The notes: a model not told the origin generated them from the letters alone. Counted from the stretch's first letter, positions 9,575 to 53,864 are shown. The stretch: 55,294 nt of DNA from Fonticula alba ATCC 38817 (GCA_000388065.2 KB932203.1); one strand, 5' to 3'. Translations and numbers: made by a program.

Positions 9575-11866
9575 TCAACCAACGCCACCGACATAGCGAT
9601 CTTTGCCATGGGATTGGGTCGGCGTGTCCACATACCCCGGGATTTTGGCGTTGTTCGGCTGGCCGAATCTGCTGTAGGGGAACTTCGTTTCAAAGAGGCC
9701 GTTCACCTCGTAGCTCTGCTCGACGCCCTCCAAGTGGAAGGTGTTCCAATTCGGGTTGAAGTAGTCCAGATAGGTGATGCGGGCCGTCTGACCGAGGATT
9801 CCGTGCGGCTCGGTCTCCGGCTTCAGCAGCAGCGTCACATGGATGTTGATGTATGCCGGCCGGACCGGCACCCCGGGAGCGCCCCACGCCGGGGCCGCCT
9901 CGGCCACCCCCCTCGGCCCGTCTGCCCCTTCGCCGTCTGCCCCTTCGGCGGTCTCTTCCTCCTCTCGGTCACCGGCCGGGGGCGGTGGTGCCGGTGTGAG
10001 CATGAACCCGGGCAGCCGGTCCAGCGGCGGATCACCGAAGTCCTGGTCCTCCTCGAAGGGGTCCGAGTGGAGGATATCCTCCGGCAGGTCGCTATAGGGG
10101 GGCGGTTGCTGGAAGCCGCCGTCGCCGCCGCCGCCGTCGCCGCCGCGACCGTCCGGCCCTCGGCCCGGCTCCTCGAGCCATGTCAGGTCCATGCGCTCGC
10201 CGAAGGGGTCATCGTCGGTGTCCGCTTGGGAGGGCAGCGGGTGCAGTTGCTCCGACAGCAGGGGGGCATGTTGCTGGCTGCCGGCGGGGTCTTGGCGGCT
10301 GCTGGTGTCAGGTGGCAGCTCGGCCGCCATCGGGCCGAGGCCATAGTTCCGCGTGGATGCGGCCACCAGGTCGGCCCACTCGGCCTCGGTGAAGCCCTGG
10401 TCCCGGCGCTCGGGCTGGTCCTGGGCAACCGACCGACTGAGCCAAGTGATGGGGTTCTGCGGGATGACCCGGGCCACGACATTCCAGCTGTAGGCACGCA
10501 GCTTCACCTGCAGGGTCCCGGGTCCCGGGCCCACCAGCTGGTAGGCCAGGGTGATGAAGATGCTAAAGGTGTGGCGGCGCTCCTTGCGCGTGGCGATGAA
10601 CACCTGCTGCTCCACCATGATGGCCCCCTCGGGCAGGATGTCGAAGCCAATGAGGATGGGCGGGCGCCCGGGCGAGGGGTTCGGAATGACGGCCCCCAGC
10701 CGGCCGATGTAGGTCCCCCGCGAGCCGGGCAGCGAGATGAACCGGGCATTCAGGCTGAACAGGGAGTCGGTGATGATGTTGTACACCCCGCCGGGCCTGC
10801 CCAGGAAGTAGTATGTCCCGGTGCGGCCGAAGCCCCGGACCTCCGGGTCGTGGGCTACCGTCCCGGAGTAGGGCTCTCGCTGGGCATGGCACTCGTTGGA
10901 GCTTCGGCAGAGGAACCGAACCACGGCGGCCAGCTCGGAGTCGGTCAGCTGGCCGGCTGCATGGGCCAGCTCCGGCTCGTGTTGGCTGTGCTGGGAATCC
11001 CTGCCGTGGCCTGGGAGATGGACCGAATGCCGGTCATGGGCGGCCCGCGCCCGGCCGGCCAGCGCTAGCACATCCCCGAGGCAGGCAAACAGCGGATACC
11101 CGGAGGCATAGCAGACCGATGCCCGGGGGGCCAGCGAAAAGGTCGGTGCCTCGGGATTCGTCACGTCCCGCTGGAGGAGCTCCCCGACCAGGCCACGCCG
11201 GGCCATGGTCCGGCAGTAGCGCAGCCGCGCGAAGCACATTACTCGCGTATCGGGCCCGGGGCATTGGCAGGCCGCCCGCGAGGTGGTCCCCATGGCTGAC
11301 AGGGCTTCGAACACCGGGGGCGCGACCGGCCGAGCGGGCTGCACCGGCGCTCCGGCCGTGGCCGGCGTCCAGGCCCACACGGCAAGAAGCACCGCCAGGA
11401 AGAGGATCCACCTGGGCGGCGAGCTGTCAGCAGCACGACCAGGCCTCTCGAGCCCGGGCGGCGATCGTCCGGCAGCAGGGCCACCGGGGGCCGGGCTCGG
11501 GCGCCGGGGCCATGGGCCCTTCGGATCGCCTGGGGCCCCGGCGGCCAGCGTCACCAGCACCGGCACCTCGGGCGGCCGCGTGGCAGCCCCAGTCCCGGCA
11601 TGGCGGCCGGCGGGCAGCCCGGCGGGGGGCGGTGGCCCCGGTGCCGGCGATGGGAGCCGCCCTGGCAGCCCGACCAGCCGACAGTCGGAGGTCGGGTCGT
11701 CACGCCGCGCGGCCGGATCCGTGACAGTGCGCTGCAGGTGGGCCGGCCGGTGGATTTCCAGATCCGGCAAGCCCACGCCAAGCTGACGGTGCATGGTTAC
11801 CAGTGGGCCGGAGTGCACCGCTACCAGGGGGGGGGCAGGAGCGCGGCGACTTGCAGCCCGGTGCAA
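9575..11866 (-). CDS. Single-exon membrane-anchored or secreted protein with a root-cap / ITIH C-terminal / VWD-like domain
   Basis: The 763-aa ORF has a hydrophobic segment WILFLAVLLAVWAW and a Cys-containing region. It then has HDPEVRGFGRTGTYYFLGRPGGVYNIITDSLFSLNARF and, near the C-terminus, PHGILGQT...LEGVEQSYEVNGLFETKFPYSRF. These recall the DP(H/R)..G.G..F.F.G...+NA.F and HG+LGQT motifs of plant root-cap and ITIH C-terminal domains. The true start codon is uncertain. Confidence 0.6.
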   Translation of the reverse strand: MHRAASRRAPAPPLVAVHSGPLVTMHRQLGVGLPDLEIHRPAHLQRTVTDPAARRDDPTSDCRLVGLPGRLPSPAPGPPPPAGLPAGRHAGTGAATRPPEVPVLVTLAAGAPGDPKGPWPRRPSPAPGGPAAGRSPPGLERPGRAADSSPPRWILFLAVLLAVWAWTPATAGAPVQPARPVAPPVFEALSAMGTTSRAACQCPGPDTRVMCFARLRYCRTMARRGLVGELLQRDVTNPEAPTFSLAPRASVCYASGYPLFACLGDVLALAGRARAAHDRHSVHLPGHGRDSQHSQHEPELAHAAGQLTDSELAAVVRFLCRSSNECHAQREPYSGTVAHDPEVRGFGRTGTYYFLGRPGGVYNIITDSLFSLNARFISLPGSRGTYIGRLGAVIPNPSPGRPPILIGFDILPEGAIMVEQQVFIATRKERRHTFSIFITLAYQLVGPGPGTLQVKLRAYSWNVVARVIPQNPITWLSRSVAQDQPERRDQGFTEAEWADLVAASTRNYGLGPMAAELPPDTSSRQDPAGSQQHAPLLSEQLHPLPSQADTDDDPFGERMDLTWLEEPGRGPDGRGGDGGGGDGGFQQPPPYSDLPEDILHSDPFEEDQDFGDPPLDRLPGFMLTPAPPPPAGDREEEETAEGADGEGADGPRGVAEAAPAWGAPGVPVRPAYINIHVTLLLKPETEPHGILGQTARITYLDYFNPNWNTFHLEGVEQSYEVNGLFETKFPYSRFGQPNNAKIPGYVDTPTQSHGKDRYVGGVG

Positions 11867-16069: not shown

Positions 16070-19000
16070 TCAATGCTTGGCGGCCGGCTGGGGGCCGCCA
16101 TATGCGGAGGGGACCTGCGACTGGTGCTGGTGCTGGGTATGCTGTGGCTGGTGCGGATGCGGGTGATGGTGATGGTAGTGGGCCGGCGCGTGTGCCGGAT
16201 ACTGCCCGGCGGCCTGCTGGGCATACGGGTGTGTCTGCATGCCGGCGGCCGATGAGCGGCCCCCGCCGCCGCCACCGCCGGCCAGGGCCGGTGAGGTGAG
16301 CGGCGACCCCGCGGCCGAGCCCGGGCCCGAGGGGGCCGGCACATCGGCAAGCGGAGCCGGGGGGATGTGCGCGGCGCCGGGGTCCGCTCGGGCCGGCCGC
16401 TGAAGGCAGTTGCCCACCGGCGACCCGGACGCACCATACTCCAGGGGAAGATGCCGCGCGCCGAAATACTCCAGGCTGAAGCCGGAATTCGGGAACATCA
16501 GCGGCCGCCATTGGGGCGAGTCGCGCCAGTGCTGGTACCGCTCCAGGGAAATGAGCGCCAGCGAGTCGCCCAGGTCCGCCGGTGACAGAGGGACCTCCGA
16601 GGCACCGGCCCCGCCGACCGAGGCGCCCCGGTGAATGGCACTACTGCTGCCGCTGCTGCCGCTGTTGGCGGCGGTGGTGGTGGTGGCGGCGACGCCAGGG
16701 CTCCCGCCGCGCGAGCCGCCCGCGCTCCGAGGCAGGGAGGAATTCTGCGGGCTCAGGATGTCCGGCGGCAGGGCCCCATTGAGCAGGCGCTCCGATGGCA
16801 GGGCCGCCGATTCGAAGACCGCCTCCGGCATCAGGTAGCACGACACCAGCGACCACCAGGGGGAGAAAGACTCCGGCCCGGCGGTGGTCATCGAGGGGTT
16901 GCCACTGACCGCGGCGAAGTTCGGGTCCGACACAAGCCCCGCGATGAAGGAGGCCAGCTCCGGGAACATGCCTTCCGAAGACCCGGCCAGGCGGTTCATC
17001 ATCACCCGCGGGTCCAGCAGCCANNNNNNNNNNNNNNNNNNNNNNNNNNNNNNNNNCTTGTAATGGCATCAGGTAGCACGACACCAGCGACCACCAGGGG
17101 GAGAAAGACTCCGGCCCGGCGGTGGTCATCGAGGGGTTGCCACTGACCGCGGCGAAGTTCGGGTCCGACACAAGCCCCGCAATGAAGGAGGCCAGCTCCG
17201 GGAACATGCCTTCCGAAGACCCGGCCAGGCGGTTCATCATCACCCGCGGGTCCAGCAGCCGGACAATGGGAGCCCGCCGCGGCTGCCCCGGCGGCACCAC
17301 CACGTCCCCGATGACCATGGATCCCTGGCGAATGCTGCCCCGCAGGCGATCGGCCGCCGGGCTGGGCGGCAGTGAGCCGAGGGCCATGGAAAAGCGCAAG
17401 TAGCGCGAGTAGATCCCGGACCGGGGCCCGGTTGACAGGTGGCTGCCTCCGCGCCGGGCCGATGTCTCGCGCAACCGCGCAAGACGATTCCCCCCGAGCA
17501 GGGGAACCAGGCGCCAGCGGACGGCCGGCGGGCCGGCCGGTGCAGGGGCTCCAGGCCCGGCTGTGGCGGCCGCGGCCGCGGCCGCTTGTGCCGCCGCGCG
17601 ATATGCCGCCAGCATGTGCTCCAGTGGCGTTTGGTTCGCCAGGGCCCGGCAAGTGTCGGCCGACACCGCATGCCCGAAGAGGATGGACGACTGTTCCTGC
17701 AGCGTGAGAGCTGCCGGCCATGGCATACCCCGCGCAGGGGGGGGGGGTCGTAAGAGGGGGTGATGCACGGTGAGGAGGGCGCCATGGTGCGGGGTGCGAG
17801 GTGCGGGCGTTGGCGCGAAGGGCAGGCAGCCAAGCAGGCAAGCAAGCAGCCGGGTCTCTCTCCCTCCACGGGAGGCGGCCGGATTACGCACACACATAAA
17901 CGCTGTTGAATTGCACCAGAGCATCCGAGAAGAGGGGATCAATGGAGGCCGCGCTGGAGGCACAGCTGTCCGCCGTCTGCGACAGAGCCTCAAATGTGTG
18001 GACATTGTAATTGATCGAGTCCATGCAGGACATCGGCATCTAAGAGGGAGGCAGAGCGAGGGGGAGGGGGAGGAAAGGGAGGGAAAGGTCAGGAAGGGAC
18101 CAATGCCGAGGACGCGGCCGCGAGCGGGGACACTGGTGCGGCACGCACAGTCAGGAACCCGAAAAGGGCCCGGCCATATGCCATGATGTGCCGGTTGGAT
18201 GTGAAGCCATCGAGGATATCCTGCGAGGGGAGGCCGGTGTCGGCTGCCGGCGGGATAGTGGCCTTTTGGGGACAGGCAATCACCTTCTGGAAGAGGAGGG
18301 CTGTACTTTTCAGGAGGACCGTCGCGCTGGTGGATCGGAGTCGGGGGGGGGGGGGGGGGCCCCAGAGTTTCCTTCGGTTGCTTGTGTCTCGGGCTTTTGC
18401 CCCTGTCTGCCCGCCCTTTTCGGCCCCTCGCCATGCCCCTTCGAGTGCCCTGCCCCGCCGGAAGGCCGGCATATGGCCACATGCGAGTGGCATGCCCGAC
18501 GCACCATGTCCCGATGGAGTAGATGAACCAAGCGTCCGAGTCGAGGCACCGACAGTGCAGCGGATCCGAGGGGAGCCCCTGACGCAGGCAAACCCGGCAC
18601 GAGGGGCAAAGCGAGCACCGGCAGGGCGGCCGAGCCGGCCCGGTGGCCGGAGGGTCCATCGGCCAGTAGGGCATCACTGCCGGTGCCGAATGTAGACGCT
18701 CCGTCTGCAAGGGTCGGAGCTGCTGCCGGCAAGATGGGCAAAGGGACCAGTGGAATTGCGGTGGCATGGCCCGCGCAGCCACCACGATCATGGGCTCCTG
18801 GATCTGGGGGTATATGGGAGGTAAGTGACTGATTGGGGCAACATGTGCTTGTGCTTGTGTGTGCAGCATCTGCGGGCAGCATGTAACAAGGGCAGACTGG
18901 CACATCACTGAGCACGGGCACGTACTTCCACAAAGAGAACCAACTCCTCCATGACCGTGGATAGCTCGCCAAGCAGGAGCAGCAGGAGCTCCAGGGTGGA

Positions 19001-29177: not shown

Positions 29178-31911
29178 GCCGGAGGGGGGGACCGAGCTGC
29201 CGAGATCCACCGACGTCCCGAGGAAGGATATTCCCTCGGGCGAGGGAGTTAGCAGGACATCCCCCATACTATGGGAGTCCTGCAGTGGTGGCAGTGACCG
29301 AGCGAAAAATTCATCCGCCGGCAGAGGCGGAAAGAAGGATGAGCGCAGGGAGACCACCATCATCTCCTACGCGAGGGGGGATGAATAAAAATGTATGTAT
29401 GTGCGCGTGCGTATGTGTGTGGAAGTGTAAGTGCATGTGCGCGGCAGGGGGCACAGGGTGAGGCAGAAGGGGACGTGGGGCAACAGATGGGCCGGAGAGA
29501 AGAGAGGAGATGGGAAAGTGCCAACCCATGGATGCGCAGAGAAGGGCGCCAGGGCCGACGCCGGCAACGGACCTGATCTCGAGTGGCGTTGATCGCGCGT
29601 GCAAGGATATTCATGTTGTTGACCAGCGTGCCGGCTGGGTCATTGCAAAAAAGCGTGTCCATCTTGACCACGAGGGAGCCATTTTCCTGTGCCAGGGAGG
29701 GCAGGAAAAGAAGGGCAGGAGCAGAGGGAAAGGCGGGAAGGCGGGAAGACGTGGGGAGATGCAGGGAGACGCAAGGGAAGCCAATCGCGTGCATACGTCA
29801 GAACCCGGGCCCAAGCAACATCAACAACCCCATCGGATGAGGCAACACATCCACAGGTGTGAACACGAGGCACGCACATCATTTACTGGCGAGGTGAACA
29901 GGTACCCGGAGGAGATGGCCTGATTGGAGAGGATGTCCTCCGGCTGGCAGGCCAATTGCGGATCGAAGCCCATATACCCAAAGGGCACGTCCGACAGGTT
30001 GAATGACCCATCAGTGGCCGACTGCGACCGGTCGCCGGGCCCGGTAGATCCGCCCAAAGCCGGCAAGTAGGACAGGGCAATGGCCCCGCGTCGAGAGGGA
30101 GTAAAGAGCCGATGATTCCGGGGGACCGGCAAGGAGAAGGGCCGAAGGCGGAACTGCAACGCAAGCCAGGAGGAACTGTCCTCGGGCTGCGACACGCCGA
30201 ACCACACCAGCGACAAGCATCTGGAGTCCTGCCGATCCAAGGCGTCCCACACGTCGCTCAGGTTCAGCCGTGGCATCATCGACCCGAGTGATACCCAAAA
30301 CTGGATTCGCAGCCAGAACGGAGGTGAGGGAACAGAAGGGTGCGGATATGAGGGGGATGTGTGCACGCGCATGTGTGTTTGTGTGTGCGGGGGGGGGGGG
30401 GCAGCTGTGTGCTGTGCGTGCGTGCGTGCGTGCGCGCGCGCATGCGTGTATACACCCACACGGGGGCTCAAGAGAGAGAGAGAGAGGGAGAGGGAGAGAG
30501 ACAAGGAGAAGGAAAATGCCCACGGGAGAGAGGCACAGGGCAAGGCAACATACCGATAGGCGGCCGGTGTCAGCAGGCCCGGACTCCATCGGCCCGGGCA
30601 CCGGAACCATCAGCAGCTGACGCTGCCCCTGGCTGGTGAGGTGGACGACCCCGCGAGGCAGGGATTGTAGAGTGGACACAAGCGCCGCCCGGGGCCGGTC
30701 CTCAGCGACCGGACCCGCTGGGACATTCGGCGGCAGGTGCTTGACACGAGCGAGTGTCCTGTCTGTTGACCGGGGGGCCTCGGCCGAGTCGCTGGCCGAG
30801 GGCTTCGCCATGGCCGCCACCGCCACCATGGTAGCCGGTGGCAAAGGGGACGATGCAGAAGACCCGGCAGTGGTGGTGGCGGTGGCCGACCCGATGGCAG
30901 TGCCCATCGTGGGGGATGGAGTGGGGGGAACCAGCACGCCGGCGGTGCTGGCGATCGGGGCGAGCCCGCCGACTGGCGTCACGGAGATTGTGGGTATCAG
31001 ATCGCATGGCGGGGACTGAGCACGACCCGATGCAACTCGTGAAGATGCCTCCGGGGATGCCATTCCAGGGGTGGACTCGGGCATGACACCGACGAGGCCC
31101 GGTGGCCCTGGGTCGACCGGCTTGACGGCTGGGGCCCCGCCTCCGGTGCTGTTGGCTGCCCGGTGGGTTTGGAGGACACGCTCACGAGAGGTGAGGCTAT
31201 GTCGGCCAGCTTGTGGTGCGCGCGGAGTCAGGGCTGGCCGGCTTGACGACGCGAAGGTATGCACACTCGGGGCATAAACACTGCATAAGGACCGGGAGGG
31301 ATGTACGGCAGGGAGGAAGCACGTCAGCCATCCAGACACAGAGGGGCAGACAGTGGGGAGGAGGGAGGGGGCAGAGGACTAAAAGGGAGGGAGAGAGGGG
31401 AGAACAAAGAAGTGGAGCATAACCATGGCTCGGTCACGACAGCCAGCCTGGGAGAGGGAGGGGGGGAGGGGCGAGCGCACGGGCCAAAGACCCCAATCGG
31501 GGGATTGTGCTCCAACACCGGGGGGAAGGCGTACTCTGCCCCGGGGAGTCGGGCCGAGTAACTGGGGCCCGGGGCTGGGGCATATGCCGCACTGATTGCC
31601 GGGCCGCCGGGCATCGTCAAGTAGCCGGGATAGTGCGACGCTTGATACGACTGCTGGGGATGGGGGTCTGGCCGGGAGGATGGCGGCGCACCGGACGACG
31701 ACCGGTTTGCACTTGACCCGGACCAATCCCCCGGCGGTAGATGGTAGCCAGCCGTGGGGAAGGGCTCGCCGGCGACATTCTGCGGAAAGGGGTGCTCCGG
31801 CGCATGGGGCCCGGAGCCGGTGCTTCCATTCGCCGCCGGGGGTCCACCTCCGCCGGGTGCCCCGGAGGATGTTGAAGAGAGAGTCGAGGAGGAGGGATGC
31901 ATGGAGGACAT
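16070..31911 (-). CDS. MED12: Mediator kinase-module subunit MED12 (Srb8), about 19 exons, roughly 4,000 aa
   Basis: MED12-like blocks occur in the right order: YMGFDPQLACQPEDILSNQAISSGY..VNDENGS (cf. human [30 protein letters not shown]); WLSLFLASYVPLSTLA; LSSYQISFARADWLVRM (cf. LAKYTVPVMRAAWLIKM); WTYLIKL..GLIDERFLLTWL (cf. WDYTEKL..GMLDRHEFLTWV); LPFVFRLLPWVRRSSTHTR; GIFSWRSFMRSLISGG; FSPWWSL; FSLEYFGA. The tail is Q/H-rich and stops at 16072-16070. Most introns were checked for phase continuity, but a few internal boundaries (22.9-25.9 kb) are approximate. Confidence 0.8.
16827..17260. repeat. Duplicated ~195-bp segment on both sides of an N gap (unmerged contig overlap)
   Basis: 16827-17022 matches 17065-17260 with one visible mismatch (G16943 vs A17181, synonymous Ile codon on the minus strand). 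The gap is at 17024-17056. Confidence 0.9.
29060..29176 (-). repeat. CAG/CAA poly-Gln tracts in MED12
   Basis: Two interrupted (CAG/CAA)n tracts, separated by YYHNHYHHH, lie in frame in MED12 exon 5. Confidence 0.9.
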
Positions 31912-42297: not shown

Positions 42298-45200
42298 ATG
42301 ATGCATCGCCTTCCGCGGGCTTCGCGCGTACTTTCTGGGCCCGCCAGGGCGGCCCGCACCCTCATCGGCCCGGGCGCCGCACAGTGCGCCATTCGCGTAC
42401 GGCACCCTCACTCCCTCTTCTTTTTTTTTGCCTCCCTTGCCCCTGGGCCAGGAACTCGAGCACGCAAATACCCCTTCCTCTGACCTCCAGCTTTGTCGGT
42501 CGCGACATGGGATTCTCTCCTCTGCCGTAGGGGCTGGCCACCACGACCGCCGGGGCGCCAGCCGCGGGGTCCCTGCCCGCGTCGCACTTTGTCCCGGCCG
42601 ACCCGCGGGTCCTCCCTCGCGACGATTTGACCCCTCTCTGGAAGGCCCAGTCGCACCTGCCGCCGCTCCCCCTGCACCGGCTCGAGCAGTCCGTGCGCGG
42701 GGTGCTGAGCAATGTGGACGCCCTTCTCGGCCCGGCCGCCGTGGCCGAGGTCGTTGTGCGTATTCCCGCTTCCGCCCAGGCGCTTGCACCGGACGTGCCC
42801 TACCGACACAAGTACTGATCGAAGATGCAGCCCCTCGCCGAGACCTTCACCGATGAGGATGGCCTGGGGCCGGAGCTCCATGCGCGACTTGAACGCCTGG
42901 CTCAGACCGAGCCCGGGAACAATTGGTTCCTGCGCTTCTGGAACCAGCATGCCTACTTCCAGCCCCGGGCCTCGCTTCCCACCAATGTCAGCTACTTTTA
43001 CTCGTACACGGATGACCAATCCTTCCGGACCCCCCTGGCCCGGGCGGCCAGCCTCGCGCACCGTGCCCTCCAATTCCGCTGGGCTCTGGACCAGTGCGTA
43101 CCCTCGGTGCCCCTGACCCCGGGCCCCCGGGCCCCGCCTTGCTCCTGTGGCAGATTCCCCCCTCCGGAGGAGGGACTGTCCCTGTGCTGACTGGCCTCTG
43201 CCCCTTACCTCCTCGCCCACCGCTGGCACACTCTCCGTCCCCCGGCCCCGGTGTCCGCCATCACAGGAAGCTTTATCCGGCGGAGTATACGCGCGATGGC
43301 AAGCCCCTGTGCATGCTGCAGTTCCACCACCTGCTCAATAGCTGCCGCATTCCGCGCCCCGGAGCTGACACCTTTGTGCAGCGTGACCGCGCGGTGCCAG
43401 GCAACCACCTTGGGCTGGTGGTTTTGCGCGGGGGCCACGTCTTCCACCTGGACCTCATCTGCCCAGATACCGGGGTTATGTTCCCCGAGTCGACCCTGGC
43501 CAAGTATGTCTCAGCCCCGGGCCTTCCGTCTGGGGGAGTAGGGAAAAAAAAAAGAGACACCACCACATCACTGCCATGACTTTGCAAGTGCTGACTCCCC
43601 GGGCCGCACCTCCTCCCCAACCGCAGATCGCTCGAGACCATCACCGAGCGCGCCGGCCAACTGGGCCCGGCCAAGTATCCCATCGGCCTGCTGACGGCCA
43701 TCGACCGGGACCAAAGCGCGAAGGTACACACACGCCCACGAACCACCGTCTCTTCACCGGCCTATGCGCTGTTCTTTTGCTGACATCCCGCCACCGCTGC
43801 CAATCAACCAGGGGCTCGACCTCCTGGAGCAAGCTTCACCCAAAAATGCCGCGCACCTGGCGTGCGTGCGGAATGCCGCATTGGTGCTTTGCCTCGATGA
43901 TACATCTCCCGACACGCCGGACCAGGTGTGTCGGGAAATCTGGCACAGCGACGGCCGGAACCGCTTCTACGATCACAGCGTCCAGATCATCTGCTTCGCC
44001 AATGGCAAGGCCGGCCATATCAACGAGGTGCGCTGGCCTGCTCCCGGCGAGCATCCCCTACAAGGACCCTGTCCCTCTGGCAGTGGCACCCGCCATGGCG
44101 TGCCGCGAGTGCTCCCGCATTCACATACGCACATATATGGGGCCATATACCTAACTGCATGCACCATGGCAAACATATTCACACATACACACGCACACAC
44201 ACGCACGTATACATGCATGCACACTTGCATCCATCCATACACGCACACGCGCCGCCATCCCTCCTGCAGCACTCCCTGGCCGATGGCTCGACCTCTATCC
44301 GCGTGGCCGAAGCCGCCACCGGACGCGGACAGGGCGCCGATCGACTGAATGAGGCCCAGGCGCTGGGCTTCGACCCGACCGGGGCGACATCCGGCACTCT
44401 GGCCACCAGCTCCCTGCGGGCTCCCCGGCATCTGGACTTCGATCTGACCGACGACCTGCGCGCACAAATCACCACCGCGGCGACGGCCGTGCGGGAGGAC
44501 GCCGGGCGCCGGGACATGCGGCAGTTCGACTTCCGGGGCTTCGGCTCGGCGCACATCAGCAAGCGCCTGCACCAGAGTCCGGATGCCTTTGTGCAGATGG
44601 CCATGCAGCTGGCCTACCGGCGTCTGCATGGCATGGCCTGCTCCACATACGAGACCGGCCAAACGCGTCTCTTCGCCGGTGGCCGGACCGAAGCCATCCG
44701 CACGGTCAGCCACGAGTCGGTCATGTGGACGACGGCCATGATGGATGACACCTTCAATGTGCGTGCCACCGCTGCCGCTGCCGCCGCCGCCGCCGCCGCC
44801 GATTTGGCCCCTGACCCTCTTTCCTCTCGCTTGCCCTTTTTCTCCCCTTACCCCACCTTGGCCGAGCCAGCCCGAGGTCCGGGCATACCTCCTGGATAAT
44901 GCCCTCCGTAGGCATGCTACCACCACCCGGGCCGTGGTCGAGGGCTCCGGCTTTGATCGGCACCTTTCGGGTCCGTACTGCGCCACTGGCTCCGGCCATC
45001 TTCACCTGTCTGATCGCCCTTTGCTCGGCCCTACACTAGTCCCCCCTGGCCGATCGTGCCTCGGGGGGGGGGGGGGGGGGCAATGAACAGGAAGGAAAAC
45101 ACATCACGCAGGCTACCCCGACACTAACGTGCAACACACATTGGACATTTACTTTCACACACACACACACACAGCACTCAAGTATGTGCTCGAGCCTGGT

Positions 45201-45482
45201 GAGACGGACCCCTTCCTGGAGAGCGCCATCCTGGATGCCTCGCGGCAGTGGACCCTGTCTACCTCGCAGCTGGTTAGCCCAGCTGTTAATGGCTACGGCT
45301 GGGGCCAGGTTTGCGACCAGGGGTATGGCATCCCGTACCTGGTGCAGGCGGACTCGCTTCGCTTCAGTGTGGCCTGTCTGTCGGGCTACGCCCGTGCGGC
45401 CGACATGAATGAGGCCATCGGCGCCGCGCTCGAGGACATGAACCAGCTCCTGTTGGCACACCCGCCCCCGGCGCGGGTGTGA
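42298..45482 (+). CDS. CAT2: Carnitine O-acetyltransferase (choline/carnitine acyltransferase family, fungal Cat2-like), about 9 exons
   Basis: Family motifs are LPPLPLHRLEQSV, NWFLRFWNQHAY..RASLPTNVS, PLCMLQFHHLLNSCRIP, IGLLTAIDRD, NRFYDHS, catalytic E|HSLADG (His codon at 44270), SPDAFVQMAMQLAY, STYETGQTRLFAGGRTE, GSGFDRHL, WTLSTSQ and GYGWGQV..GYG. Stop TGA at 45480-45482. Confidence 0.93.
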
Positions 45483-45918
45483 GGCCGGGCCCCACCGTTG
45501 GCATCTGCGCCATGAATACACCACAGCGACATCCGGTCCGGTCATTTGTACCTACCTCCCCCTGGCAGGGCCTTTGTTCCCGGTCACAAGCGGGGCGAGA
45601 CGGAGCGGGTTCTTTGCGTGCGGCAACGAATGAGCATGCACTGTGCGTTGGGCGCGATCTGCCAACTGCTCGAGGGTGCAGGGCCTGGGGGGGCCCACCT
45701 CAACGATCGGACACACGCGATCGGCCAGCCGGCGGATATACATTCCTTGCGAAGACTCTTCGGGGGGTGCTTGACAAGGGGCCGAGGCCCGGGCCCGGCC
45801 GCAGTGAGCTCTCCTCTCGCCCTCTCCCGCCCTCCTTCCGCCCCTCCGTCGGTCTTCCGCATTCAGCCCTCGCGCGCGACACCCATACACAATCGGCATC
45901 CCTGCCTCCCTGCCGGCC

Positions 45919-48900
45919 ATGGGCACACCCAAATCGGTTCTGCTCCGCCGCCAGCGAGCCGCCCTGCGGCCGCCCACCGGCAACGCGGATGAAGCGCCAA
46001 CCATCTCTGGCCCGGCACCCCCTGCGACCTCAGCCGCTGTCCCGTGCGGTGCCCCGCTGGTTTCGACTCGGCACCTTCTGGCTGCTGTCCTGCTCCTGCG
46101 CTTGGCGCAGGCTCTTCTCCAACGAACAGCCTTCAGCCCGGACGAGTTCTGGCAGTCCCTCGAGCCGGCCTACTTCCTCGCCTTTGGATATCCTTGCTTG
46201 TGCCACACCTCCCCCCCCCCCCCCGGCAGTTCTTTATCCCGAGCCTCCCCTCGCTCCCTTCCCTCCCCCCCGTTGAATGAGCGCGTGACACGACCGCCCC
46301 GAGCCGATGTCGATACGATGTCTGGGCAGGAGAAGCAGGCAAGGCAAGGCAAGGCAAGGCAACCCCCCATATGGCGGGCCCTGTGGCTTCAGATGCGCGC
46401 AACATTCAGCGCCTCGAAGACTGGCAGAGCTCCCGGAGGCCAGTAGGCAGGATGTCGTCACTCATCCTGCCCACGCCATATGGTGGCTCGCCATTCGCCC
46501 CCCCCCCCCTTCCCTCTTGCTTGACATCGTGCGATGCGAGAGGCGAGCCGACATCCGCTCGCCTCCGCCGCTCGCAGGAAAGAGAGTCCGACCCACCCGA
46601 TGCACCGCTGCCCACTCGCCGCCTCGCCCGCCAGACAAATCCCCGGTTGTTGCCTTGACTCCCCTGCTTGACCCCCCCCCCTCTCCTGGAACCCCACACA
46701 TCGGGCAATTTGACCTGGGAGTGGACAGCCACGCGCCTACGTGGCTGGCTTCACCCGGGCCTCTTCGCCTGCGTGTACTTTCTACTTGGGAAACTCGGCC
46801 TCGAGGGCACGCGCCTTCTGGTACGCTTCTCTCCTTGTGCCCAGAGAAGATGTCGATGTGGTGCTAACCACCGGCGGATGCCCTGCGAGCAGATCCTCGG
46901 CCCCCGGCTCCTGCAGGGTCTCATCGCCTTTGCCACGGACATGGCCACTTGGCGCCTTGGGAGTCGCCTTTTCTCCCGGGCCGCAGGACGTTGGGCGGTG
47001 CGCCGGTTGCCTGACCTGCCTGCTTGCCCCCTCTGCCACCCCCCTCCGCCCCGCCCTCCCCTACTGCACGTCCTGACACGAGCCCGTGCGATGGCGCACA
47101 CCCGGCCAGCTTCTCTTCTCGGTTGGACTCTGGTTCAATGGCTATGCCCTCACCCGGACCCTGGGGAACTCGCTGGAGACGTGTCTGCTCGCGTGGGCCC
47201 TGGCCCTGTGGCCTTGCGCCCAGACTCCGGCCCGTGGGACTCGCTATGTGCCGGGCTTGGCGCTGGCTGCCCTGGCGGCGGCCGTCCGTCCCACGGCCCT
47301 GGTCTACTGCCTGCCGCTGGGGCTGGTGGAGCTGGCTAGTCTCGTGTCCACGGCACGAGGCGGTCTTTCGGCCAAACGACGCCTGGCCGTTGGCTGGGTA
47401 CTGCTGTGTACCCTGGTCGGGTGCGATATATGGCCAGTGCTTGTGCTGTTTCCCCCCCCCCCCCCCCCCCACCTCCCCTCCCTCGGCCCCTCGGGGAGTG
47501 CGCACATGTGAGCCCGCCTGCTGACCATAGCCATTCGCGTCTGCCTCCCCCTGCCGGACCCACACACGCGCACACACCGCTGCCCAGCATGACGGTCTTC
47601 GCGCTGAACGCCCAGCTTGACCGGCGGCTGTATGCCCTGGCGGCCGAGCACTTCCTCGGACCGGGCGAGGCAGCCGCCGGGCTGGCGCAGCTTTGGTCTT
47701 GGAGGCCGACGCTGCTGAACTTCCTGCGCTTCAACTTCACCCTCTCGCTGTCCTCCTTTTACGGGGTCCACGGGTGGCTGTGGTATTGGACTGAGGGCAT
47801 AACCGTGGTGGTGGGCGTGTGGCTGGTGCCCCTTGCGGCCGGTGTCGCCGGTGCCCTGGCCCGCCCTCCGGGAGACCCGTTTGCCCGGCGCATTGGCTGG
47901 CTCCTGACGCCGGCGATTTTCTTTGTGGTCGTACATTCGCTGCTTGCACATAAGGAGCACCGGTGCGTCGGGTGGTGCATGCCGGACCGGTGGCACGCGA
48001 AGGGCGCGGCAAGCGGCCAGGGGAGGGACACGGAGACCGGGAGCGCACGCGCCGCAGATCCAAGATGCTGACCGCTTGCCCAGCTTCATTCTCCCCGTGG
48101 TGCCGGCCTGTCTGGCGGTGGCCGGAGCCGGCATGGAACGCCTGGTCGACGGCCTGGCCCCGGGACCCGTGCTCGCCCACAGCGAGGCAACATCCCCGGC
48201 GCCACGGTCGCGCTTCCTGGCCGGCGGCTTGGTGATGGCCGGCCTCCTGGCCAACCTGCTGGCCTTCCTCTTTTTCGGCTTCATTCACCAGGCCGCCCCG
48301 ATCGGAGCCAGTCTCTTCCTCCGACGCATGGCTCCTGGCAGGTGCGCTCCTCCGGGGTGTGCGCTACAACGAGAGTCCAGAGGAGGGGGGGCGGGGGGGG
48401 CGAGGGACTGAAAGGCCGCCGGGGAGGGCATGCTGCCGCTTGAGTCCTGCGCTCCGGAAACTAACCCACCCATCGGTCGGGCCCCCTTTACACAGTGAGG
48501 GCATCCTCATGCTGACTCCCTGCCATCTGACACCGCTGGCATCGTACCTGGGCGACATGCGCGGCACGCCCGTGCGCTTCACCACCTGCGAGCCGCCCCT
48601 GCCGGAGGAAGCCCTGTCACCGGACTTCGTGGCCTCCCTCCGCCGCCGGGCGGCCATGGATGTCCCCGGCTCGCGGGCGCCCCTGCGCGGCTCCACCTCC
48701 CCATATGCCGATGCCCCGGGGAACATCTTCGTCACCGTGGCCGCAGGGGCCGGGTACCGTCCCGAGACGGATCTCCTCTTCTCGGCCGGCAGTTCGGCCG
48801 AGACCCTGCAGACGGCCACCTCCCTGATGGAGGCCGAAGTTTTCGCCGGTCGCAAGCCCTCCTTCGTTGTCCTGTACGAGGGGCTCCTCCGGCGCCTGGG

Positions 48901-49108
48901 CCAGCTGGACCCGGCCCTACTCGAGGGCTATGAGTTGGTGCGTGTGCTCAACGCGGTGGCGCTGGTCTGCCCTCGGGCCCGCAGCATGGTGGCTTGTGAT
49001 TCTGACACACGTGCCCGCCAGTGTGCTGAATTCTCCGACGGCCCGGTCCGGGTGGATTCGCGCTACGAAGGTCAGCTTCTGATTCTCTGTCGTGATGTGG
49101 CGGAATGA
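45919..49108 (+). CDS. PIGB: GPI alpha-1,2-mannosyltransferase III (PIG-B/Gpi10), 7 exons
   Basis: Conserved motifs are RTAFSPDEFWQSLEP, GNLTWEW..RLRGWLHP, PRLLQG, RTLGNSLET, VRPTA, NFLRFN..FYGVHGWLWYWTEG, HSLLAHKEHRFILPV, GFIHQ and LMLTPCHLTP. Introns 2-6 are GT-AG and intron 1 is AT-AC. Confidence 0.93.
46188..46699 (+). other. U12-type (minor spliceosome) AT-AC intron in PIGB
   Basis: The 5' end is ATATCCTTGC (U12 consensus RTATCCTT). A branch-like CCTTGAC lies at 46653-46659, a second CTTGAC at 46667-46672, and the 3' end is ...CCACAC. Phase-2 splicing gives AFG-S-GNLTWEW, the same length as human VFN-Y-GYLTWEW. I found no GT-AG pair near these boundaries that restores the frame. Confidence 0.88.
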
Positions 49109-51287
49109 CATTCCCTGTTCCGGGGGCCCCGACTTACGAGGGCTCCTTGCCTGCGCCCGGCGAACATGCATTCCTTGGTTGGGCTTGTCGCGCCGCGCCT
49201 TGCCCCTCTCCCTGGCGGGAGTGCCTGGCTGTGCGTTCGTTCCGGATGGAGATGTGTCGGAGCCCATCCCTCGCCTCGGGTTCGTTTGCTCCATGCTCTC
49301 CGGCCGAGCGGGCGCAAAAGTCCCCCCGACGGACAGATGATCTTTTCCCCGCAAAAGAGCTCCCATTATAATATATCATATATCCCACAGACGGGGAAAG
49401 CCCCAGGTGGCGCGGACCATCTCACCACCCTGTGTTGGGCGTCAGATTTGAGGTATGCTGGGGACTTTGGTCCCGCTTGCCCTCGCCCCCCCCCCCCCCC
49501 CCCCTGGGCCTGGCTGCTGCCCTGGGGAGGTGTGCGCGTGTCTCCCGTGCCCTGCACGCGACGACCCTCCGCCCGCGGGCCGAGCCCAGGCTCCGACCGG
49601 GAGCCCAGGCTACCCGGGTCTGGACGTCATTTCCGGGGCTGGCACGCGGGGGCCGCACGCGGGCGCGCACGGGGCCTGGGGGTTGACCTCCGGAATTACG
49701 CTTACGCCCGGGTCGGTTGGGCGGGCCGCCCTTCCCTTCACGGCTCTCCCCCGGGGGGGGGGGGGGGGGCGCCACGCCACCCGGCTCCCCCCCCCCCCGG
49801 GCGGCTGTCGGCCGGTGAAACTGAGGCGACCGGTGTCCGTACCCAAGCGCTGTGGGGGGCTTCCGGACAGCCGGGTCCCTGGTGCCCGGCGGTGCCGTCC
49901 GCTCGGGGCGGCTCCACTCCTGTCGGGCGGGCTGAATTTCCTTATGTGCGGCCGCTGGCCCGGGCGGCTGCGGGCGCGCGAAGTGGGGCGTGCGCGCACC
50001 ACAGCGGGGCCTGGTCACGCCCTGGGCGAATCATTCGCCCGGTTGCCGGCCCCGCAGCCTTGTTCCAGTGCACACGGGCGGGGGGCACGCGCCGGCTTCA
50101 GGCGGCGAGACAAGCGGGGCGGGGCCGGCTGACTTGGGCGCGCACTTTTGCCCCGAGCCGGTCCAATCTCCCGCCCTTTGTCCAGGGCCGCGGGGGGGGN
50201 NNNNNNNNNNNNNNNNNNNNNNNNNNNNNNNNNNNNNNNNNNNNNNNNNNNNNNNNNNNNNNNNNNNNNNNNNNNNNNNNNNNNNNNNNNNNNNNNNNNN
50301 NNNNNNNNNNNNNNNNNNNNNNNNNNNNNNNNNNNNNNNNNNNNNNNNNNNNNNNNNNNNNNNNNNNNNNNNNNNNNNNNNNNNNNNNNNNNNNNNNNNN
50401 NNNNNNNNNNNNNNNNNNNNNNNNNNNNNNNNNNNNNNNNNNNNNNNNNNNNNNNNNNNNNNNNNNNNNNNNNNNNNNNNNNNNNNNNNNNNNNNNNNNN
50501 NNNNNNNNNNNNNNNNNNNNNNNNNNNNNNNNNNNNNNNNNNNNNNNNNNNNNNNNNNNNNNNNNNNNNNNNNNNNNNNNNNNNNNNNNNNNNNNNNNNN
50601 NNNNNNNNNNNNNNNNNNNNNNNNNNNNNNNNNNNNNNNNNNNNNNNNNNNNNNNNNNNNNNNNNNNNNNNNNNNNNNNNNNNNNNNNNNNNNNNNNNNN
50701 NNNNNNNNNNNNNNNNNNNNNNNNNNNNNNNNNNNNNNNNNNNNNNNNNNNNNNNNNNNNNNNNNNNNNNNNNNNNNNNNNNNNNNNNNNNNNNNNNNNN
50801 NNNNNNNNNNNNNNNNNNNNNNNNNNNNNNNNNNNNNNNNNNNNNNNNNNNNNNNNNNNNNNNNNNNNNNNNNNNNNNNNNNNNNNNNNNNNNNNNNNNN
50901 NNNNNNNNNNNNNNNNNNNNNNNNNNNNNNNNNNNNNNNNNNNNNNNNNNNNNNNNNNNNNNNNNNNNNNNNNNNNNNNNNNNNNNNNNNNNNNNNNNNN
51001 NNNNNNNNNNNNNNNNNNNNNNNNNNNNNNNNNNNNNNNNNNNNNNNNNNNNNNNNNNNNNNNNNNNNNNNNNNNNNNNNNNNNNNNNNNNNNNNNNNNN
51101 NNNNNNNNNNNNCCCCCCCTCCCTCCCTCCCTCTTTCTAGATTCTCTTGGTCCCGGGGCCCCCCTGTCTGATGTTCTCCCCTCCCCCTCATCCCGCCCGA
51201 CCTTGCAGCCACCACGCCGCTCAGCCCGGTGCTGTCCAGACCGCCCCGACGTCTTTGCCGTCCCCCACCCCGGCCGCCGGCTCGGCC

Positions 51288-53791: not shown

Positions 53792-53864
53792 GCTCCTGTG
53801 GCTCAGTAGGTAGAGCGTGGGACTGTTAATCCCAAGGTCCGCGGTTCGATCCCGTGCGGGAGCG
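53792..53864 (+). tRNA. tRNA-Asn (GTT)
   Basis: 73-nt cloverleaf: acceptor stem GCTCCTG/CGGGAGC plus discriminator G, D arm GCTC-AGTAGGTA-GAGC, anticodon arm TGGGA-CT-GTT-AA-TCCCA, T arm CGCGG-TTCGATC-CCGTG. There is no intron and no encoded CCA. Confidence 0.97.

Follow-up and report, generated by a model that had tools for sequence, protein, structure and literature searches.

The first intron of the PIGB/GPI10 gene of Fonticula alba ATCC 38817 is very probably a genuine U12-type (minor-spliceosome) AT-AC intron. It occupies positions 46188-46699 on the plus strand of the 55,294-nucleotide (nt) stretch of GCA_000388065.2 KB932203.1 analyzed here (hereafter the window). Its 512 nt are removed precisely from the PIGB mRNA. 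A first-pass annotation made from the sequence alone had proposed this intron, and its coordinates proved exact (A at 46188, C at 46699). The assignment to the U12 class is supported by the AT-AC splice observed in RNA, by a perfect U12 donor unlike the GT[AG]CG donors of the other introns of the gene, and by orthologous AT-AC introns in animals.

The RNA evidence came from four public runs (X1-X4) of one study, representing two samples, whose contigs were placed on 45000-49500. The four runs contained about half of the sampled words from the gene region, matching the expectation for spliced mRNA. The longest contig (X1 record 1, 2359 nt) aligned in eight mismatch-free pieces and spanned 45809-49387. 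The junction of 46187 with 46700, skipping 512 nt with the termini AT..AC, was present in contigs of X1, X3 and X4. In X2, a contig starts at 46700 and carries an unaligned loose end identical to the final 17 nt of exon 1. The AT..AC dinucleotides were therefore seen in mRNA, with a 2-nt ambiguity at the joint, and the remaining six joints of the gene were all GT..AG (6/6 in the contigs). The low depth recorded over 46359-46660 in X3 and X4 stems from contigs joining at tracts of poly-C. Long homopolymer stretches of G or C (45062-45081, 46498-46516 and 47447-47470) cause chimeric joins among the RNA contigs and inflate their depth. The resulting gene model comprised the following features:

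45809..49387, plus strand: transcribed span of PIGB (GPI mannosyltransferase 3, GT22), from the longest transcript contig
45919-49108, plus strand: PIGB coding sequence, eight exons
45919..46187, plus strand: coding part of exon 1, beginning with ATG and ending with PDEFWQSLEPAYFLAF plus GG, the first two bases of a Gly codon
46188..46699, plus strand: intron 1, AT-AC, phase 2, 512 nt, 66% G+C, with the joint in X1, X3 and X4 and the loose end in X2
46700..46820, plus strand: exon 2, (G)SGNLTWEWTATRLRGW..., with the conserved FG-x-G-x-LTWEW restored without an indel
46821..46892, plus strand: intron 2, GT-AG (GTACGC..CTAAC..CAG), U2-type, from contigs, at a position common across opisthokonts
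46998..47109, plus strand: intron 3, GT-AG (GTGCGC), U2-type, from contigs; starfish has a U12-like GTATCCTT intron at the equivalent position
47421..47587, plus strand: intron 4, GT-AG, from contigs
47963..48083, plus strand: intron 5, GT-AG, from contigs
48342..48495, plus strand: intron 6, GT-AG, from contigs
48938..49021, plus strand: intron 7, GT-AG, from contigs

Joining the RNA-defined exons gave an open frame of 655 amino acids (aa), which the AT-AC intron interrupts in phase 2 after residue 89. Exon 1 ends with GCC TTT GG at 46187 and is followed by ATATCCTT; on the acceptor side, AACCCCACAC precedes the exon, which resumes with A TCG GGC AAT TTG ACC TGG GAG TGG at 46700. In the conserved ..F-G-x-G-x-LTWEW motif, the intron thus splits the Gly codon that follows Phe, and its removal gives the indel-free motif that the first-pass annotation had predicted. 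Two other ways of reading the locus were rejected. Read-through of the intron meets a stop (open reading frame 45919..46446), and a GT-AG splice using 46633-46634, the sole AG among the final 70 nt before the acceptor at 46699, runs into an in-frame TGA.

The spliced model was letter-for-letter the public 655-aa protein H696_02501 [Fonticula alba], described as 'hypothetical protein' (GCA_000388065.2, KB932203.1). Because the two are identical, the public Fonticula annotation already models the AT-AC intron correctly. The expectation that predictors restricted to GT-AG would mis-model this gene therefore failed for the public annotation of Fonticula, and it seemingly holds for a chytrid ortholog described below.

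The identity of the gene was established from its product. Exons 2, 4 and 5 matched Pfam PF03901 (Glyco_transf_22, the Alg9-like GT22 domain), which is also precomputed on the public protein. A HMMER search of 1.8 billion representative proteins with exon 5 reached the orthologs, and a word-based search with the whole protein gave five matches. The named relatives were 'GPI mannosyltransferase 3' or 'phosphatidylinositol glycan class B', the alignment with starfish PIGB was full-length (BLASTP E = 2e-60), and the N-terminal PDE-x-WQS..FG-x-G-x-LTWEW motif was common to the Fonticula protein and its PIGB relatives. Judged by the closest named relatives and the motif rather than by a paralog tree, the gene is the PIGB/GPI10 ortholog and not ALG9, ALG12 or PIGZ. 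Its product would transfer the third mannose of the glycosylphosphatidylinositol (GPI) core, a function predicted from orthology only. A search for solved structures related by sequence to the protein found none.

The donor lies directly after the RNA-defined exon end:

46188..46195, plus strand: 5' splice site ATATCCTT, matching the U12-type donor consensus perfectly

The six U2-type donors of the gene are GTACGC, GTGCGC, GTGCGA, GTGCGT, GTGCGC and GTGCGT. All of them follow GT[AG]CG, with C at +4 and G at +5 (introns 2-7, 46821-49021), and in each of these six introns the CAG acceptor is preceded by a CTRAC motif at a distance of 12-63 nt. The AT-AC donor is wholly outside this local pattern. 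The GT-AG introns of the gene measure 72-167 nt, so the 512-nt intron is indeed longer than its neighbors, although the range of about 70-290 nt given for them in the first-pass annotation was too wide. The window is G+C-rich (64-74%), and ATATCCTT occurs in it three times against 0.31 expected by shuffling. The two minus-strand copies, at 29224 and 29603, were considered as donors and rejected, as they resemble coding sequence (..N-I-L.. and ..G-I-S-F..). Further RTATCCT matches (23855, 15875 and palindromes at about 10071 and 18213) looked coding, intergenic or palindromic and were likewise not taken as donors. A 10-nt palindrome, AGGATATCCT, present in two copies (10071-10080 and 18213-18222), accounts for 4 of the 9 RTATCCT matches.

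The position of the intron was compared across opisthokonts by threading the PIGB proteins of nine other species exactly onto their genes and placing the introns on a MAFFT alignment. Five of the seven Fonticula PIGB introns were at positions common across opisthokonts. The AT-AC intron falls at alignment column 124, where the following introns were found:

Fonticula alba: column 124, phase 2, ATATCCTT..AC, 512 nt
Asterias rubens (starfish): column 124, phase 2, ATATCCTTTT..CCTTAAC..AC, 527 nt
Solea solea (fish): column 124, phase 2, CAA^ATATCCTTTG..CCTTAAC..AC, 196 nt (^ marks an exon-intron boundary)
Capsaspora: column 124, phase 2, GTAGGA..CAG (GT-AG), 139 nt
Blastocladiella: column 124, phase 2, GTCCCG..CAG (GT-AG), 57 nt

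No intron was found at this column in four threaded fungi, Gonapodya, Synchytrium, Calcarisporiella and Podila. The Solea intron permits no alternative cut and is unambiguously AT-AC. Judged from shared position and phase, the Fonticula intron is orthologous to the fish and starfish AT-AC U12-type PIGB intron, suggesting that PIGB already carried an AT-AC intron in the common ancestor of animals and fungi, if not earlier.

The first-pass annotation had also named vertebrate PIGB as a minor-intron gene, possibly with the intron at this same position. The Minor Intron Database lists PIGB for both human and mouse, the human intron being chr15:55320411-55321272 (ENST00000164305) with the 5' splice site 12-mer CAAATATCCTTT (Olthof 2019, PMC6717393), and PIGB also appears as an AT-AC minor-intron gene in a 2026 preprint. 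Over its first 11 bases, the human 12-mer agrees with the donor context of the fish, CAA^ATATCCTTTG. The proposal was thus borne out, with the fish intron at the identical column and phase and the human intron placed via the fish.

The PIGB protein of the chytrid Phlyctochytrium arcticum (GCA_025602905.1, JAHLKI010000020.1) carries a five-residue insert, PFQIH, exactly at column 124. The DNA there reads GG^ATATCCTTTT...AATCCTTAAC, 23 nt, ...TTTAC^G (680-762 of the fetched locus), and an AT-AC splice gives the indel-free VFGKGYLTWEW. The insert is probably a U12-type AT-AC intron that was mis-modelled by a GT-AG predictor.

A second position in the gene also bears on intron type. Asterias has a second U12-like intron (1883-2845 of the fetched locus; GTATCCTTTT..ACCTTGAC..CAG, phase 0, at ..ARWA^LF..) with the branch-type motif CCTTGAC. 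The same position holds a U2-type GT-AG intron in Fonticula (46998-47109), Capsaspora, the fish and four fungi. To judge by the splice signals, intron type therefore differs between species at a single PIGB position, the site of Fonticula intron 3.

The 3' part of the intron contains the acceptor and two putative branch sites, and a repeat lies farther upstream:

46653..46659, plus strand: CCTTGAC, best branch-site candidate, with branch A at 46658, 41 nt before the intron end at 46699
46666..46672, plus strand: GCTTGAC, second and weaker branch-site candidate, with branch A at 46671, 28 nt before the intron end
46697..46699, plus strand: 3' splice site CAC, from contigs; the intron ends with CCCCACAC
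46335..46365, plus strand: (CAAGG)n microsatellite in the intron, forming a 17-nt inverted repeat (82%) with the branch motif at 46653, whose CCTTG core it complements

CCTTGAC lies where the first-pass annotation had placed it, 41 nt upstream of the point at which the frame resumes. The candidate branch 12-mer GTTGCCTTGACT is one base off the branch-point sequence of the human UFD1 minor intron (table in Olthof 2019), and GCCTTGAC at 46652-46659 matches 7 of the 8 bases of TCCTTRAC. No AG occurs downstream of the branch candidates. The ACs found there are GAC (46672, in frame), AAC (46692), CAC (46697, out of frame) and CAC (46699, in frame and used), so that only two are pyrimidine-AC sites, CAC 46695-46697 and the overlapping CAC 46697-46699 that is used. 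Contrary to the first-pass annotation, the AC at 46699 is not alone in having the right phase: AC 46671-46672 is also in frame, though the contigs skip it. This unused acceptor lies 14 nt past the first branch candidate, and its use would add nine residues; minor isoforms of this kind are invisible in contigs. The complementarity between (CAAGG)n and CCTTG is probably incidental, a chance match. The fold of 46600-46720 was no more stable than shuffled sequence (z = +1.25), which leaves a structural shortening of the distance between branch and 3' splice site unsupported.

If the intron is removed by the minor spliceosome, U11 would pair with the donor and U12 with the CCTTGAC-type branch site, and catalysis would proceed via U4atac/U6atac.U5. 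The 3' splice site would be the first in-frame pyrimidine-AC downstream of the branch, and it would fall at 46699 since the nearer candidates read GAC and AAC. The long spacing possibly has the same cause, those nearer sites not being pyrimidine-ACs. The intron would have been inherited from the opisthokont ancestor; Capsaspora and Blastocladiella would have changed it to GT-AG, and several fungi would have lost it. By inference, the Fonticula lineage keeps a minor spliceosome that most fungi have lost.

Several observations weigh against the assignment to the U12 class. The joint is ambiguous by 2 nt, with AT following both 46187 and 46699, and the cuts TA..CA and AT..AT are equally compatible with the reads. 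No intron-retaining contigs were seen, but contigs cannot reveal minor isoforms or retention. The full TCCTTRAC octamer was searched for and is absent, and the spacer between branch motif and 3' splice site is C-rich, which is untypical of U12 introns. The functional range between U12 branch and acceptor is about 10-26 nt, and the distances of 41 nt (CCTTGAC) and 28 nt (GCTTGAC) are outside the usual range. The optimum is 11-13 nt, and the Minor Intron Database pipeline scans the final 40 nt only (Olthof 2019, PMC6717393). In the orthologous introns, the distance is about 9-11 nt in fish and starfish and 23 nt in the chytrid. The window also contained no minor snRNA genes, as Rfam at the gathering threshold over its 55,294 nt found a tRNA only. 

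Rfam searched at E<=1 with 46100-46800 gave a chance miRNA match only, and the long intron thus holds no recognizable hidden RNA gene. The tRNA gene (53792-53864, plus strand) was the single Rfam match of the window at the gathering threshold. Among the papers searched, none linking Fonticula with U12 introns or the minor spliceosome was found, and the text of the supplements of two pan-eukaryotic surveys mentions neither Fonticula nor PIGB.

The 28-41 nt distance from branch to acceptor is the sole mildly unusual feature of the intron. It may tentatively be explained in either of two ways, although we consider this doubtful: the Fonticula minor spliceosome may tolerate a much looser spacing than that of animals and plants, passing over two ACs with a preceding purine and one CAC that is out of frame, so that the 3' site would be chosen by scanning for pyrimidine-AC instead of by distance, or the intron may now be handled by the major spliceosome. 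The latter idea, taken by itself, would make the intron a former U12 intron that retains a U12-like donor in a lineage losing, or having lost, its minor spliceosome. The 28-41 nt spacing lies within the 12-63 nt range of CTRAC in the U2-type introns of the gene, TTGAC is compatible with a loose U2 branch pattern, and the minor-spliceosome machinery of Fonticula is itself inferred only. However, the donor ATATCCTTGC matches the local GT[AG]CG at position 2 only, and the relatives that converted the intron, Capsaspora and Blastocladiella, also switched its termini to GT-AG. U2-type AT-AC introns, moreover, have U2-like donor and branch signals, and no lineage lacking a minor spliceosome is known to retain perfect U12 donors. 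Removal by the major (U2-type) spliceosome is therefore unlikely.

Less likely still is a cut displaced by 1-2 nt, which would make the intron TA-CA (46189-46700) or AT-AT (46190-46701). The three cuts are indistinguishable in the reads, and AT-AT is a rare minor-intron subtype known in animals (Larue and Roy 2023, PMC10639083). Among the three equivalent cuts, though, only AT..AC sets the U12 donor consensus at intron position 1; the cut at 46188 alone gives both ATATCC at intron positions 1-6 and a terminal AC, and the orthologous fish intron is AT-AC with no alternative cut. Hardly credible, finally, is an artifact in which the joint arose at the 2-nt AT repeat, through template switching by the reverse transcriptase or a jump of the assembler, and the true mRNA is spliced elsewhere or unspliced: it could appeal to the 2-nt microhomology and to the use of assembled contigs instead of raw reads, from runs that may be the annotation's own data, but the identical joint recurs in three runs and two samples while a contig of the fourth run has the exon 1 tail as its loose end, it restores the open 655-aa frame and the indel-free conserved motif where read-through meets a stop and no in-frame GT-AG pair exists, and its position is orthologous to animal AT-AC introns.

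The U12-type AT-AC assignment was further compared with known systems. The vertebrate PIGB minor intron is in the same gene, is of the AT-AC subtype, has the ATATCCTT donor and lies in phase 2 after the Phe of ..VF-N/G-Y-G-x-LTWEW. The vertebrate and starfish introns differ in having a CCTTAAC or TCCTTAAT branch about 9-11 nt from the 3' end, whereas Fonticula has CCTTGAC at 41 nt (or GCTTGAC at 28 nt) and a C-rich spacer. The Fonticula intron resembles the broader class of U12-type AT-AC introns (Tarn and Steitz 1996; Hall and Padgett 1994, as cited in Larue and Roy 2023, PMC10639083) in its donor consensus, its AT-AC ends, its non-zero phase and its greater length than its neighbors. Like them, it stands alone among the many U2-type introns of an old housekeeping gene; its branch-to-acceptor distance goes beyond the usual range of the class. 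U2-type AT-AC introns have the AT-AC termini in common with it, while the Fonticula intron has a U12 donor instead. Minor introns also occur in early-diverging fungi such as Rhizophagus irregularis (205), Rhizopus and Phycomyces (Larue and Roy 2023, PMC10639083). These are likewise on the Holomycota side, where a few lineages retain the minor system and most fungi have lost it; Fonticula, in contrast, belongs to a sister lineage of Fungi and is not a fungus.

Two other features of the window were recorded. An upstream neighbor on the plus strand (about 45182-45482) is a carnitine/choline acyltransferase gene, with PF00755 on the called product, and ends about 330 nt before the start of the PIGB contig. 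A run of N at about 50200-51130, an assembly gap, causes stretches of X in translations of open reading frames.

The intron is an ordinary, conserved and ancient representative of a known class, in a gene whose vertebrate forms were already known to carry it, and the known picture of minor introns is unchanged. In practical terms, the chytrid gene model illustrates how a predictor restricted to GT-AG may add spurious residues, here five, at the site of an AT-AC intron. The fates of the PIGB AT-AC intron can now be laid side by side: it was kept in vertebrates, starfish and Fonticula and probably in a chytrid, became GT-AG in Capsaspora and Blastocladiella, and was lost in four fungi. A transcript-verified intron, very probably of the U12 type, is thereby added for Fonticula alba, a sister lineage of Fungi.

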